From sequence record NC_019538.1: DNA of 64,000 bases; one strand, written 5' to 3'. Below are positions 33,688 to 37,818 of the stretch, piece after piece. The notes under the pieces were generated by a model. It was not told where the DNA came from, did not search any database, and was given only the letters and a program-made list of their open reading frames with translations. A program made the position numbers and the translations under genes. Positions within the stretch are counted from its first letter, which is position 1. The number at the start of each line of letters is the position of its first letter.

Positions 33688-34976
33688 TTATTCTACACCG
33701 GTTACCGATTCAAACTTACCTTCTGTAATAAGGAAGGTGATCTTGTCTGAACAATGATACACCATTTTTACGGGAACTTTACTACCGATCTTGAATTCAT
33801 ATTCTACACGAACCACACCAGAATTAAAAGTGGTTTCAACAATTTCGATTTTCCCCAAGTGTTCTTTACGAAGGTCTTTCAAGGTACGGACAATATCAAA
33901 CTTCAATTCGTCCGGAATGGCCGCAACCGCATCATAAAAGTCCTGTTCCTGAACTTTTCGGATCTGGCTTTTGATTACGTTGACGAATTTTTCGATTGAT
34001 TTATTGTTTACGTTGTCAATACGAGATTGTTTCATTTTTAGCTCCTAGATTTGAATGTAAACATTACAGAAACGTGTGGGCTTCTATCGTGGGTTGGGAC
34101 AACAGACCAACATAATACATCATAACCTTTGGTAGATGCAATAGGATCTAGATCATTCAGTAAAGATTCTACGGAGTTCTCAAATGCCCGATATTCATAT
34201 TTTTTCAGAGACTCAAATTCTCTTGACAGTTGAACAAATGATTTTACAACAAATTTACCAGTCCACATAATTAAACCCTCTCCAACATTGGAAGAATAAG
34301 AGTGTGCAACATATCCATGTAAGTCTGATGGTAGATGTCTTGATGGATCTCTTTGAGATATTCCATGGTGTCCCGCCCGTTGAAAGACCAGCTAACAACC
34401 GCAGCATTATCAATCTCTCGCAACGGGTTTCCGTTGAAATTAACAATGATGAAATTCTCACTTCGTGGGATCTCGATGAGCCATTCGTTTTTCCCAGCCA
34501 ATGATTTACCTTTTGAAACCACGACTTTTCGTACATCTTCATTGATAAATTGGATTTTCATAAAACACCTCTCGTTTGTTTGAGAACCCATAGTACCAGA
34601 AACAAAAATGGAGTCAAGCGATTTCTCGCAAGACCCCATAAAATTATTTCTTGAGCATACCAGTAAGTTTGTGGTGTGCTAGGTTAAAGCTTTGTTGTGT
34701 ATCTGACTGAGACCGTTTCCAAGTAATCTTACCAAAATCCTCAATAGGACTGATGTTTACCTTGGTAATATCTACGTTTTCTTTCACCCAACGTTTCCAT
34801 TCCCCCATCTGGATTTCGTGGAATCGTTTAGCTTCGCGCATACCAGCAGTATTCATTTTTGCTTGAACACTGTTCAACATAGAAATGTATTGGTTTACAA
34901 TCCGGTTGTAATCCTTGGATGTTTTCATTTGAAACGATTCATCGATACGTTCGAAAAATTCTTTGTTCTTAATCAT
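33688..34976 (-). CDS. Hypothetical genes 33688-34035, 34038-34268, 34271-34561 and 34644-34976
   Basis: ORFs with RBS. Confidence 0.68.
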
Positions 34977-34987
34977 TTTAGTAATCC

Positions 34988-35902
34988 TCAGAACTTATTA
35001 GCAGCAACGCGATCATACACAATGACTTTCTTAAATTTGGTTGGCTTTTCGAAATCTTTATCGTCATCACTGTCATTGTCTGGAAAAGCTACCGTACCTT
35101 TTTTAAGGTCTAGTTTGACCACAAAGGTTTTTTGATCACCAAAACGTCCCCCTCCGCTCATATCTACACGAACAACCCCTTTACCAAAATATTTGGTATC
35201 ATGGCTATCTGGAATCATAAGTGCAAAAGTTTTATTGTTTGGCATAAGAAGATGACCAAATTGTGCAATAGAACCAGTTTCACGTTCTTTAGCTGGGGTA
35301 TCACTATATTCAATGATACCAAGGCTTTCGTTAATCGTCATAGCTTCCATCAATTCTTCTTCGATGTCAAAGATTATAACAGAATCTATATCATGTTCAA
35401 GTAATTCTTTTGCTTCGTTTAACATACCAACGAATTCATCTTGGATCATTAGGTATTCAACCATAGATTCCATCATTGCGCTTTTTTGACCAGCAGCAGT
35501 TTGTTTATGAGAGATCTTACCACCGGTTCCTTTTGGGAACACAGTAACAATATTGATTTCGCGACCTTTTACAGAACCAACTACAGAACGGTTTTCAGAT
35601 TGGGAATGGAACATATAAGTACCACTCTTAATCTTGTTTGCTTCTACGTGTTTTACCATCTTACGAGCAAAATCTTTCCACTCTTCCGCCGTTTTAGCAG
35701 CAGCTCGTTGGTGTGCACGGGCTTGAGCATGGACAGAACTTTGAACTTTAAACGCACCAACTCGCATAGAGACAGGTAGCTTTGATTGTTTACTAAGTTC
35801 AAATTCCTGATCTTTAGTAAGTTCGACCTTTTGATTTCGGCTTTGTGCCATTTGTTCGTCAAACCGGGTCAGGGTTGCGAACAAGTCTTTAGTTTTCAAC
35901 AT
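34988..35902 (-). CDS. Putative late-expressed internal head (capsid-packaged) polyprotein with a BECR-like domain
   Basis: Start at 35902 after AAAGGA RBS and late promoter; S.HA..R..QR...IVTVFPK domain; cluster of (L/I/M)xE sites at residues 143-192. Confidence 0.55.
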   Translation of the reverse strand: MLKTKDLFATLTRFDEQMAQSRNQKVELTKDQEFELSKQSKLPVSMRVGAFKVQSSVHAQARAHQRAAAKTAEEWKDFARKMVKHVEANKIKSGTYMFHSQSENRSVVGSVKGREINIVTVFPKGTGGKISHKQTAAGQKSAMMESMVEYLMIQDEFVGMLNEAKELLEHDIDSVIIFDIEEELMEAMTINESLGIIEYSDTPAKERETGSIAQFGHLLMPNNKTFALMIPDSHDTKYFGKGVVRVDMSGGGRFGDQKTFVVKLDLKKGTVAFPDNDSDDDKDFEKPTKFKKVIVYDRVAANKF

Positions 35903-35930
35903 GTTGTTTTCCTTTCGTAGATCTACATAT

Positions 35931-36218
35931 CTATTTAGGAAGTAGGAAAACCTCAACAAGTACAGCAATAATACTCACGCCAACCACAATAACCTTGTGT
36001 TTCTTTTTCTTCGATACCATAAAAGCAGTACCTAAGCCAAATCCGGTTGCAAACAGAGCAAAAGTCATAACATCCCCTTAAGACATGGCAAGGAGAGACA
36101 GGGAAGAAAGACCAGCTACGATATAGCCAGTAGTGAAAGCGCGTTGATATGCTGCGCGGGTAGCCTGTACCGATTTTACGAAACAAACACCCGCAACAAA
36201 ACCAAGTGCGATTACCAT
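35931..36218 (-). CDS. Two small membrane peptides, 36078-36218 (46 aa) and 35931-36068 (45 aa, absent from the track)
   Basis: Both have an RBS and hydrophobic helices; MTFALFATGFGLG...VFLLPK. Confidence 0.6.
35932..35939 (-). promoter_or_regulatory. T4-type late promoter (CCTAAATA, variant of TATAAATA)
   Basis: TAAATA 30 nt upstream of the ATG at 35902, overlapping the stop of the upstream ORF. Confidence 0.6.
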
Positions 36219-36283
36219 CTCTTTCTTCCTTCTCGTTAGTTGATATGAGTAGTATACACGAATACTGACGATGGTCAACTACT

Positions 36284-36670
36284 TTAAAAAAGAATTTTCA
36301 CGATAGTAAAAATTATTGCGTAATGAACAAGATGATGTGCCATTTGGTCTAGACCGAGATGATACCAAAATACTGGTTCTTGTGGTGTGTGACCTCGACT
36401 TAATTCAACTTTCATTTTATCAATAAAGAAGTGAGATATAAAATCAAAAAGAGTAAGACCAAGTACAACCCATATGTTCAAACCCATAATGATCGCAACG
36501 AACATTGTCATTAATGCATGTACCGTACAATGTGCTGCAAGGGGTGTAACCCAACCAACCTCTTTAAATTTCCCAAGCATATACTTACCTTGTAACAGGT
36601 AATCCGCTGAAAAATGTTTTATTTGGTAAAACACCAACAACCAAAAAATAGTACTAACAGGTTCAATCAT
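36284..36670 (-). CDS. DUF3307-family membrane protein
   Basis: HF.AD..LQ...K, HCTVH, HFFID..K and GLDQMAH motifs with TM segments. Confidence 0.8.
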   Translation of the reverse strand: MIEPVSTIFWLLVFYQIKHFSADYLLQGKYMLGKFKEVGWVTPLAAHCTVHALMTMFVAIIMGLNIWVVLGLTLFDFISHFFIDKMKVELSRGHTPQEPVFWYHLGLDQMAHHLVHYAIIFTIVKILF

Positions 36671-37818
36671 TTCAAAAAGTCCTTACAAACAATGTTCTCA
36701 TCAAATACTTCTGGGTATCCAAGAAGGTTCACCAGACGTTGACGACATGCTACCACGTTAGATTCCACTATGTCAAAACCAAAAAGCTGATGAGAAATGG
36801 TTTCCTTATCATGACCCATATCTAGCCTACGCTCGGCAATCCGGTACAAAATGTTACCGTCACCACAGGCAGGGTCACAAAAGGAACCATCCCAGTTAAC
36901 AACACGGTCAAGTAACATATCAGTAACCACGTCTGGGGTAAAAACCTCGTGGGTGGATTTCTGTCGCTCTAAGTTAAACTCGGAAGCAACCCGATTCTTA
37001 TCCTCTGTGTGCGTCCCTGAATGGTATCTTCCTCGTGTTTCTACTTCATAGTAGGGTAACACACCCATATAGTCACAAATCCACTCACGAATCGTTGGAA
37101 GAGGTTTGGTGAGGTCTGGATATGGTACTGATGCCAGAGTACCAGAATCTAAATGCTGGTTGTTTTTATAAAGCGCCAAGAAAACTCTAGCATAATCCGA
37201 CTTGATATACTCCAAGAATTTATTCGCTTCTTCTAAAGTATCAAACCCATAGTGATGCCATTTAAGATTTGGTTTCGTTTCTACTATGTATTCTTTAGGG
37301 ACCATAGTAAAGAAATCTGCGTTAAACCTTTCCCCAGCGATTGGGACATGACCACGGATCAAACCAATATTGACGAAATAGTTTCCTTCTGGATTTTGGC
37401 TATTTAAAAGATTCTTTTGAACTGGTAACGCTTCATACAGCTTTGATATCTGGGTTCCGAAATAGTTTAGTTCATCAACTTTCATCCTATTTCTACCGTT
37501 CGTCATAGGCCCGTATACATCGATATACCCACTAAATGGAACACCAATTATTGTATGGGTTATGGATAATGGTACAAATAATCCAGCAGAAAAATAGAGG
37601 TTCCCATCAATTAGTTCCATTGATGTTATGTTTTCGCCGACTATCTTTTTAAATTCAACCACCCGTTTTTGTTCTTTGACTGGACGACGATTAAAAAATG
37701 GGGCAGATGGATGAACACAAATTATCTCTCTCCCAATAGAACTCGCTTTGTTAAAGAAGTCTAAGTGGAGATTCCTGTTATATGGTGGATTCATTATCAC
37801 GTAATCATATGAAATCAT
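36667..37818 (-). CDS. Amino (N6A/N4C) DNA methyltransferase, circularly permuted gamma-like
   Basis: NPPY at residues 10-13; EVFTP 291-295, DPACGDG 315-321, GFDI 347-350, NIVCKDFL at the C-terminus. Confidence 0.8.
   Translation of the reverse strand: MISYDYVIMNPPYNRNLHLDFFNKASSIGREIICVHPSAPFFNRRPVKEQKRVVEFKKIVGENITSMELIDGNLYFSAGLFVPLSITHTIIGVPFSGYIDVYGPMTNGRNRMKVDELNYFGTQISKLYEALPVQKNLLNSQNPEGNYFVNIGLIRGHVPIAGERFNADFFTMVPKEYIVETKPNLKWHHYGFDTLEEANKFLEYIKSDYARVFLALYKNNQHLDSGTLASVPYPDLTKPLPTIREWICDYMGVLPYYEVETRGRYHSGTHTEDKNRVASEFNLERQKSTHEVFTPDVVTDMLLDRVVNWDGSFCDPACGDGNILYRIAERRLDMGHDKETISHQLFGFDIVESNVVACRQRLVNLLGYPEVFDENIVCKDFLK

Follow-up and report, generated by a model that had tools for sequence, protein, structure and literature searches.

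The window analysed here is the whole stretch of 64,000 nucleotides (nt) that makes up bases 1-64000 of Aeromonas phage CC2 (NC_019538.1; Straboviridae, Emmerichvirinae, Ceceduovirus); window coordinates equal genome coordinates, and megablast gave 100% identity of the region to this phage. All annotated genes in the window lie on the minus strand. Nearly all of them encode short hypothetical proteins, and the early functions td, frd, denA and rnlA are scattered among these. The subject of this text is one of the hypothetical genes, F485_gp193 (gp193), together with the element directly in front of it, which an earlier note on this DNA had proposed to be a late promoter. The comparisons described below point, with about even confidence, to gp193 being a late-transcribed internal head protein of the T4 'Ip' (internal protein) kind that is made as a small polyprotein and carries a BECR-fold effector as its first module. 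The features at the start of the gene are as follows.

34988-35902, minus strand: coding sequence of F485_gp193, 304 amino acids plus stop, annotated as hypothetical
35903-35931, minus strand: 5' leader of the proposed late transcript, as read from the sequence, with an AAGGA ribosome-binding site at 35910-35914
35932-35939, minus strand: very probable late promoter CCTAAATA, core CTAAATA at 35932-35938
35931-36068, minus strand: F485_gp192, 45 residues, predicted membrane protein; the promoter is formed by its final codons and stop (CCT AAA TAG)

Database searches gave little by way of a name. Neither gp193, nor its halves, nor the family profiles had a significant named match in Pfam, NCBIfam, PADLOC or PDB sequence searches. 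In PHROGs the N-terminal part of gp193 matches phrog_18967 and phrog_17629 and the C-terminal part phrog_7322, all of unknown function, and for the relatives, too, PHROGs returned families of unknown function only. A paper describing the family was not found in the literature.

The promoter of F485_gp193

In Aeromonas phage Aeh1 the late-promoter motif is CTAAATA, which replaces the T4 octamer TATAAATA (Nolan et al., PMC1524935), as restated by Geiduschek and Kassavetis (PMC2988020). The CC2 genome holds 53 copies of this motif, mostly preceded by one or two C and mostly located just upstream of head, tail and baseplate genes. It stands 13-40 nt before the starts of gp24, gp20, gp19, gp15, gp13, gp9, gp5.1, gp48, gp4, gp26, gp67 and inh; for gp23 and gp22 the distance to the start codon is about 70 nt. 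A 62-kb late region of the genome contains 33 copies; the 64-kb window contains one, both strands counted. The late promoter that had been claimed upstream of the ATG at 35902 is present in the form of this single copy, within CCTAAATA. It is separated from the ATG by 29 nt, a usual distance for late genes of CC2, with AAGGA as the ribosome-binding site 7 nt before the ATG.

How far the scarcity of the motif in the window is informative depends on the background model. Dinucleotide-preserving shuffles give an expectation of 11.8 copies (standard deviation 3.1), with at least one copy in 100 of 100 shuffles, and an order-3 Markov model gives 8.1 copies (P(<=1) = 0.003). Sibling 7-mers that differ from CTAAATA at one position number 4-11 in the window. 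Because an order-5 Markov model expects just 2.7 copies, depletion alone is suggestive and not decisive.

Conservation of the motif was followed in one Vibrio locus and in 13 further Aeromonas-phage loci of 2.8-6.5 kb, the latter sampled from Ceceduovirus, Ishigurovirus, Cinqassovirus, Angelvirus, Chrysonvirus and phages without genus assignment. Each of the 13 Aeromonas-phage loci has a single CTAAATA on either strand, and this copy is always upstream of the gp193 homolog and on the same strand. The distance to the ATG of the homolog is 25-40 nt in P19, Assk, AP1, avDM6, 65.2, ZPAH1 and Ahp1, and about 270 nt in Aeh1, Ah1, phiAS5, PX29 and AsFcp_4; in the Aeh1-type loci the motif fronts a small hydrophobic-protein gene that overlaps the gp193 homolog. 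In Vibrio phage vB_VmeM-32 the place of CTAAATA is taken by T4-type octamers at -30 and -26. Since a single motif is conserved across 13 loci and the Vibrio relative carries the octamer, a chance motif is very unlikely, and comparison across these phages makes CCTAAATA the late promoter of gp193 with high probability.

Three further observations concern the transcription and annotation of the locus. A perfect 10-bp palindrome, GTAGATCTAC, is located between the promoter and the ribosome-binding site (35917-35926, minus strand) and is identical in P19, Assk and AP1; the predicted RNA fold of this 5' leader palindrome is no better than that of shuffled sequence (z -1.5). A sigma-70-like promoter match (TTGACC-16 nt-TATACT; window 36251-36278, minus strand) stands before gp191, and a search for a terminator-like site between it and gp193 found none, so that early read-through into gp193 is possible. 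The AsFcp_4 ortholog (L016:1147-1689) is annotated as a misc_feature without a coding sequence.

Leader, linker and modules

The 304-residue product can be divided into four segments.

35855-35902, minus strand: putative capsid-targeting leader, residues 1-16, ending F-D-E↓Q (arrow, cut predicted from comparison with orthologs)
35399-35821, minus strand: predicted BECR-like (phage-BECR-like) domain, residues ~28-168, basic (isoelectric point, pI, 9.7), from an AlphaFold2 model
35288-35398, minus strand: acidic linker, residues ~169-205, pI 4.05, with five of the six strict (L/I)-x-E sites
34991-35287, minus strand: module A, residues ~206-304, basic (pI 8.9)

From T4 it is known that the prohead protease gp21 cuts after L/I-x-E (review of Black's work, PMC9026906). 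The first 10 residues of IPIII are enough for packaging, with residues 4 and 7 of this leader used for targeting and residues 8 and 10 for processing (PMC9026906). Leaders were compared with T4 by these published position rules. CC2 has an annotated gp21 prohead protease at 152839-153564 and a gp22 scaffold at 151984-152817. The N-terminus quoted in the earlier note is present in gp193, as is the stretch SSVHAQARAHQR...IVTVFPKG. The leader has 16 residues, with hydrophobic residues at 7, 8 and 11 followed by F14-D-E16, a pattern that is also found in the downstream gene product gp194. In the orthologs it ends in I-E-E↓S, L-Y-E↓S, L-D-E↓S or I-N-E↓S at residues 11-16, and gp193 and its closest relatives can be described as having 13- or 16-residue leaders that end in (F/I/L)-x-E and are followed by Ser or Gln. 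In more distant relatives the leader is 10 residues long, with position 8 occupied by L/I and position 10 by E; the homologs of Aeh1, Ah1, phiAS5, PX29 and VmeM-32 show this exact register, followed by Ser.

The pattern is strongly enriched in the family. A start of the form M-x6-[LI]-x-E occurs in 27 of the 89 other family proteins, compared with 11 of 443 gene-like CC2 open reading frames (binomial p ~5e-22). When any hydrophobic residue is accepted at position 8, which holds for 29 family members, 90% of them are also hydrophobic at position 4 and 93% at position 7, and a hydrophobic-x-Glu ending within residues 8-19 is present in 71 of the 89. The longer form M-x6-[LI]-x-E-S is found in CC2 only in gp22 (the scaffold), gp048 and gp122, and all three have late promoters. 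Capsid targeting by an N-terminal peptide, as had been proposed, is thus likely when judged by comparison with the family, in which the leader pattern fits the T4 rules; for gp193 itself the support is less direct, its own leader being a longer variant.

The cleavage motifs of gp193 are confined to one part of the protein. All six strict [LI]-x-E sites fall within residues 161-198, with none in 17-160 or 199-304, and none of 5000 whole-protein shuffles matched the observed site count in a 52-residue window. A local shuffle of the segment predicts 4.0 [LIM]-x-E sites where 8 are seen (P = 0.01). The cluster is non-random. The linker has 6 sites in 38 residues, against 14 in 277 for the CC2 gp22 scaffold. 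The five (L/I/M)-x-E sites of the earlier note all exist, and MVE-Y, IEE-E and IIE-Y can be added. However, residues 132-168 are confidently folded in the AlphaFold model, from which it follows that the real linker spans ~169-205; MME-S and LNE-A lie inside the folded domain, and the linker boundary drawn before was too generous. The sixth strict site, LNE at 161-163, is in the last helix of the N-terminal domain. Orthologs have the same site layout as gp193, and proteins that consist of the N-terminal domain only stop at the start of the linker. A full-length AlphaFold model built from 10 sequences was too poor to use (predicted local distance difference test score, pLDDT, 55); its confidence in the linker is low, and helix is predicted in part of it.

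Comparison of the C-terminal modules gave independent support for the idea of a polyprotein. In phages avDM6 and 65.2 the gene after the gp193 homolog encodes a 90-residue protein with its own leader. A metagenomic phage (P0008) has the N-terminal domain fused to the module that is seen as the 90-residue stand-alone protein in avDM6: the C-terminal part of the P0008 protein is 58% identical to the whole avDM6 protein, leader included (E 4e-34), and the leader end ...L-S-E↓S-K-D of the latter aligns with ...I-N-E↓S-K-D in the P0008 linker. The second case is module A of gp193, which has no Pfam, NCBIfam or PDB match. It is homologous (39-40% identity) to the first module of RB43ORF200w and of Yersinia phage JC221_139 (E 4e-16 for JC221_139). 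When residues 190-304 were used as query, the protein search gave close relatives only, and the distant ones came from tblastn against phage genomes. Both RB43ORF200w and JC221_139 are located between genes 3 and 2. A T4-type late promoter precedes each by about 38 nt (AATAAATA and TATAAATA, respectively), and each leader is 10 residues long and has I/L at position 8 and E at position 10. Their products are chains of two or three modules with acidic L-x-E-rich linkers between them. The I-N-E↓S of gp193 falls in the same alignment column as their leader sites ISE↓S and LNE↓V. Because both kinds of C-terminal module also occur alone, with leaders whose cleavage site aligns with the linker site, the polyprotein idea gains weight. 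The simplest reading of these alignments is that the linkers would be retained leaders and the modules separate cargo units freed by the same protease. Internal cleavage of the gp193 linker has, on this comparison, an even chance of occurring. A different C-terminus in Assk was considered as a case of module swapping and rejected, as it reflects an assembly gap (a run of N) in an UNVERIFIED record (L013:1201-2133).

The N-terminal domain

Close homologs of gp193 are few, and their alignment shows a highly conserved N-terminal part (~28-165) and a C-terminal part that is variable or absent. By tblastn, homologs of the N-terminal domain were found only in T4-like phages of Aeromonas and Vibrio and in one Variovorax phage. 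A profile search of 1.84 billion representatives retrieved 83 proteins, nearly all of which match positions ~27-127 only. These and the N-terminal part of gp193 make up an 84-sequence alignment with a mean column identity of 9%. Its sequences match phrog_17629 (84/84) and phrog_18967 (83/84), both of unknown function.

With this alignment AlphaFold2 modelled residues 1-180 at a pLDDT of 90.9 and a predicted template modelling score of 0.75. The modelled domain consists of short strands 45-48 and 51-55, helices 57-66 and 72-88, strands 93-100, 105-112, 115-121 and 139-143, and helices 147-153 and 155-168. This is the topology of the BECR/PBECR fold, to which strands 45-48 and 51-55 are added ahead of the helix. 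Additional strands in front of the N-terminal helix are frequent in PBECRs, and DUF4258 belongs to the same colicin-like branch (preprint 10.64898/2026.08.28.747851); the gp193 model fits this description of PBECRs. The conserved positions are concentrated in a few residues. Out of 84 sequences, His58 is kept in 83, Arg66 in 81, Thr or Ser120 in 81, Trp75 in 79, Glu145 in 78, Ser100 in 76 and Pro123 in 75. The near-invariant His58 and Thr120 lie on the first helix and on a late strand of the model, respectively. The active-site layout of PBECR and colicin-like BECR RNases is likewise a His on a helix and a Ser/Thr on a late strand (PMC5512222; 10.64898/2026.08.28.747851).

A Foldseek search against PDB placed the toxins ParE (6xrw, 6x0a) and HigB2 (5ja9, 5mje) at or near the top, with E values of 0.08-0.3 (best 0.079), probabilities of 0.5-0.7 and template modelling scores of 0.43-0.53 normalised to the target. 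Neither NCBIfam nor sequence searches of PDB gave a BECR match. Lenient Pfam scans of 10 members gave isolated sub-threshold values for Gp49 (0.035), RegB (0.056) and DUF4258 (1.8, with the full model spanned). The earlier note had assigned the region to a BECR/DUF4258 fold and had suggested an AlphaFold/Foldseek check. What stands of this is the BECR-like topology, the conserved His and Thr and the identity of the weak top matches; what does not is a DUF4258 or Pfam BECR assignment, and the matches to solved structures remain below significance. On the model, a BECR-like fold of the N-terminal domain is reasonably probable, with family membership by sequence match not supported. Endoribonuclease activity, as suggested by residue conservation, is a more tentative proposal that we rate at somewhat less than an even chance.

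The domain is also used in other contexts. A Foldseek search against viral models shows that it recurs inside larger uncharacterised phage proteins, and larger relatives fuse it to an S-adenosylmethionine lyase (P0031), to RelA/SpoT (P0070, P0073, P0078) or to a Zeta-toxin/AAA_33-like region that stays below the Pfam cut-off (P0040). The first of these, a 392-residue protein on a metagenomic T4-like contig (L022:6001-7179), has a leader-like N-terminus (I8-x-E10↓A), followed by the S-adenosylmethionine lyase and then the gp193-type domain. Its contig also carries a T4-type major capsid gene and a UvsW-like helicase. This protein is a candidate injected anti-restriction enzyme fused to a BECR-like module.

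In the 78 sequences that keep Glu145 (column at window ~35468-35470), the residue two positions before it is hydrophobic in 74 and the next one is Ser or Gly in 49. Only 14 residues (median) follow it across the family. Three roles are conceivable for Glu145: C-terminal processing at a conserved site, catalysis, or a contribution to the fold.

Proposed route, alternatives and related cargo

A possible route from transcription to effect can be outlined for gp193, in which packaging, cleavage, injection and RNase activity are what we infer from the comparisons given above. The gp55-type late RNA polymerase of CC2 would start at CCTAAATA. The leader (residues 1-16) would bring the precursor into the scaffolding core of the prohead, where the CC2-encoded prohead protease gp21 would trim the leader after Glu16 and also cut the acidic linker at one or more (L/I)-x-E sites. 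This would leave two basic proteins in the head, and both would enter the next host along with the DNA. The first would be a phage-type BECR-fold domain, in which His58, Arg66, Ser100 and Thr120 suggest a metal-independent endoribonuclease, with host or defence RNA at the start of infection as the putative target. The second, module A, would be an exchangeable cargo module.

A more elaborate version of this route, which we consider quite unlikely, is that capsid maturation arms the effector, within a modular fusion system. In that case the leader, the C-terminal helices after Glu145 and/or the linker would mask the RNase site in an antitoxin-like manner, and the prohead protease would strip these masks only inside the sealed head. 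The precursor would then be harmless in the producing cell and become an active RNase only in virions and the next host. More broadly, T4-like phages would fuse neighbouring leader-bearing genes and keep the second leader as a protease-cleavable linker.

Related systems offer both likenesses and differences. T4 Ip1-3 are diverse apart from the leader, and each inhibits one GmrSD-type restriction enzyme (PMC12373910). Like these late-made, non-structural proteins, which are brought into the prohead core by a leader, cut after (L/I)-x-Glu and injected (PMC9026906, PMC12373910), gp193 would by sequence comparison follow the same path. The Ip genes occupy variable hotspots and have nothing but the leader in common, and the leader of the gp193 family has the same position pattern. 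In contrast, the Ips are single small binding inhibitors without a conserved fold, whereas the gp193 cargo is a conserved enzyme-like domain plus an exchangeable module joined by a site-rich linker, and its leader has 16 residues instead of 10. A T4 protein matching gp193 did not appear in the sequence, profile or structure searches made. T4 Alt, a packaged ADP-ribosyltransferase, is processed by gp21 at both ends (PMC9026906), injected, and acts at once on the host machinery; it differs in fold and chemistry and in being a single product, and no homology was detected.

The PBECR domains of polyvalent proteins are predicted metal-independent phage RNases, found solo or fused to conflict domains (RelA/SpoT and others) and thought to be packaged and injected (PMC5512222). 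They share with the gp193 domain the His on the N-terminal helix, the Thr/Ser on a late strand and the extra strands before the helix (10.64898/2026.08.28.747851). The Pfam PBECR models do not match gp193 or the relatives scanned, and the means of delivery differs: PBECRs are described as part of MuF or portal fusions or of giant proteins with their own peptidase domains, whereas gp193 would use a T4-type leader and the prohead protease. In comparison with the polyvalent proteins of Iyer et al. (2017), gp193 has two modules, its relatives fuse the domain to S-adenosylmethionine lyase, RelA/SpoT or a Zeta-like kinase, and no built-in peptidase, MuF or portal domain was found in gp193 with Pfam and PHROGs. 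The RelE/ParE-superfamily and DUF4258 toxins of toxin-antitoxin systems (PMC11980606) have a similar small alpha/beta fold, with ParE and HigB2 as the best solved-structure matches and Gp49 and DUF4258 giving weak profile hints. They differ in that no significant sequence match was obtained and no adjacent antitoxin-type gene was identified at gp193, a phage gene that appears to be expressed late and whose product has a putative capsid leader as well as additional strands at the N-terminal and helices at the C-terminal end. What looks new relative to these known systems is a conserved enzyme-like domain on a T4-type leader, with junctions that resemble recycled leaders.

Several points weigh against the proposed route. 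Over the N-terminal domain Pfam gave no match for gp193 (E <= 1) or among the 84 sequences (E <= 0.01), no significant sequence or profile match to BECR families (Pfam PBECR, DUF4258, RelE/ParE, Gp49, RegB) was obtained, and Foldseek against PDB found no match at E <= 0.001. The gp193 leader is out of the canonical register by its 16 residues and the Phe that stands, in place of Leu/Ile, three residues ahead of the predicted cut. Leu/Glu-rich acidic helical segments produce L-x-E through composition alone, as the local shuffle (4 against 8) illustrates, and Glu145 may serve structure or catalysis instead of cleavage. The gene may also be transcribed early, which is ill-suited to a toxic RNase. 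Virion proteomics for CC2, Aeh1, RB43 or near relatives were not found in the literature.

In view of the above, four other explanations can be considered. In the first, gp193 is packaged but its first domain is not an enzyme and acts as a binding inhibitor of a host defence protein, like T4 Ip1, Ip2 and Ip3. Every T4 internal protein whose target is known, three in all, is a binding inhibitor (PMC12373910), inactive PBECR domains such as that of Mu gp30 have been recorded by Iyer et al. (PMC5512222), and the ParE-like members of the BECR fold bind protein and do not cleave RNA (PMC11980606), ParE being the top fold match of gp193. However, despite a mean column identity of just 9% in the alignment, between 76 and 83 of the 84 sequences keep each of His58, Arg66, Ser100, Thr120 and Glu145. 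Such conservation suits a catalytic site better than an interface that co-evolves with variable host targets, and the T4 Ips are unconserved beyond the leader (PMC12373910), in contrast to the N-terminal domain of gp193. This explanation is unlikely but has to be taken seriously.

The second explanation concerns the linker: gp193 would be packaged and lose the leader alone, with the modules staying joined as a two-domain protein and the L-x-E motifs of the linker being by-products of an acidic spacer. The alignment of the linker sites with stand-alone leader cleavage sites in two independent module families is difficult to reconcile with this, as is the fact that solo N-domain proteins stop right where the linker starts. 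On the other hand, linker composition alone yields about four sites, the full-length model shows helix in part of the linker, and gp21 of T4 spares some L/I-x-E in T4 proteins, the determinants being few and accessibility being important (PMC9026906). We hold retention of a joined protein to be rather improbable.

A third possibility is that gp193 is made late without being packaged and has its place of action in the cytoplasm of the cell that produces it, for example as a late RNase or regulator, the leader being an amphipathic helix of some other role. T4 RegB, a BECR-fold RNase that acts on phage mRNAs within the infected cell (PMC5512222), would be a precedent; one family member has a weak RegB match (E 0.056), and some late gene products are no virion components. 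Four observations make such a role hard to accept and leave it with a low probability. Of the members of this highly divergent family, 30% have the leader position pattern, with Glu at 10 and hydrophobic residues at 4, 7 and 8. Unrelated late proteins of CC2, among them the scaffold, have this pattern as well. The cleavage motifs crowd together between modules, and the folded modules have none. The modules, in addition, are met again as individual genes with leaders of their own in late and structural regions. Finally, that CTAAATA is a chance by-product of the gp192 stop region (CCT AAA TAG) and gp193 an ordinary early gene is very improbable, since the overlap with a stop codon, the order-5 expectation of just 2.7 copies and the upstream sigma-70-like site have to be set against a motif that is kept as the sole copy per locus in 13 loci of five genera and unassigned phages, at varying positions, at some sites without an overlapping stop of a reading frame and at some 270 nt upstream before the preceding small gene, and that is replaced by a T4-type motif in the Vibrio relative.

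If gp193 is an internal protein, it may not be the only one encoded at this locus. Directly downstream lies a second leader-bearing gene.

34644-34976, minus strand: F485_gp194, 110 amino acids, 11 nt downstream of gp193, with a gp193-type leader

The gp194 leader ends in I-D-E↓S at residues 11-13, which is the sole [LI]-x-E of the protein, and it is kept in P19, avDM6, 65.2 and ZPAH1. No terminator-like site was found between gp193 and gp194, and gp194 has no Pfam match. Probably, gp194 is also targeted to the capsid and shares the late transcript of gp193. Because gp194 also has a leader of the gp193 type, the locus looks like a small hotspot of leader-bearing late genes, the content of which varies among close relatives.

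Elsewhere in the genome the combination of late promoter and leader marks further genes. F485_gp048 (L006:30684-31697, plus strand) has a late promoter, a 10-residue leader (L8-x-E10↓S) and then a DnaJ J-domain (Pfam E 5e-9), and is a candidate injected J-domain protein; its homolog in the Vibrio phage, VmeM32_00154 (L020:2106-2895), lies two genes downstream of the gp193 homolog and has an L8-x-E10 leader. F485_gp019 (L006:39560-40411, plus strand; genome 203560-204411), with a late promoter 30 nt upstream, a leader-like N-terminus and a Pfam Zeta_toxin match above cut-off (31 bits against 22.3), is a candidate packaged kinase. F485_gp122 (L004:3078-3452, minus strand; genome 67078-67452), in the early region just outside the window, encodes 124 residues with the leader I8-x-E10↓S and has a late promoter 63 nt upstream; it gave no Pfam match and is a candidate internal protein. 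Within the window, the 383-residue hypothetical protein F485_gp189 (36667-37818, minus strand) starts with an NPPY-type motif, which is typical of N6-adenine DNA methyltransferases, and the syntenic gene in a metagenomic locus (L027) has a weak N6_Mtase Pfam match.

Injected phage proteins act before any phage gene is read, and in this way they decide whether an infection survives the first defences of the host. To our knowledge few of them are understood; those of T4 that are comprise three restriction-enzyme inhibitors and one ADP-ribosyltransferase. The findings on gp193 point to a conserved, enzyme-like family of cargo proteins (~90 representative clusters, all unannotated) that would use the T4 capsid-targeting leader. 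They also suggest a simple rule for spotting cargo in Aeromonas T4-like phages, namely a late promoter, a leader and cleavage sites confined to junctions, with the J-domain protein and the Zeta-like kinase as further candidates in CC2. A plausible way in which such cargo may evolve is that neighbouring genes fuse and the leader of the second is retained as a cleavable linker.

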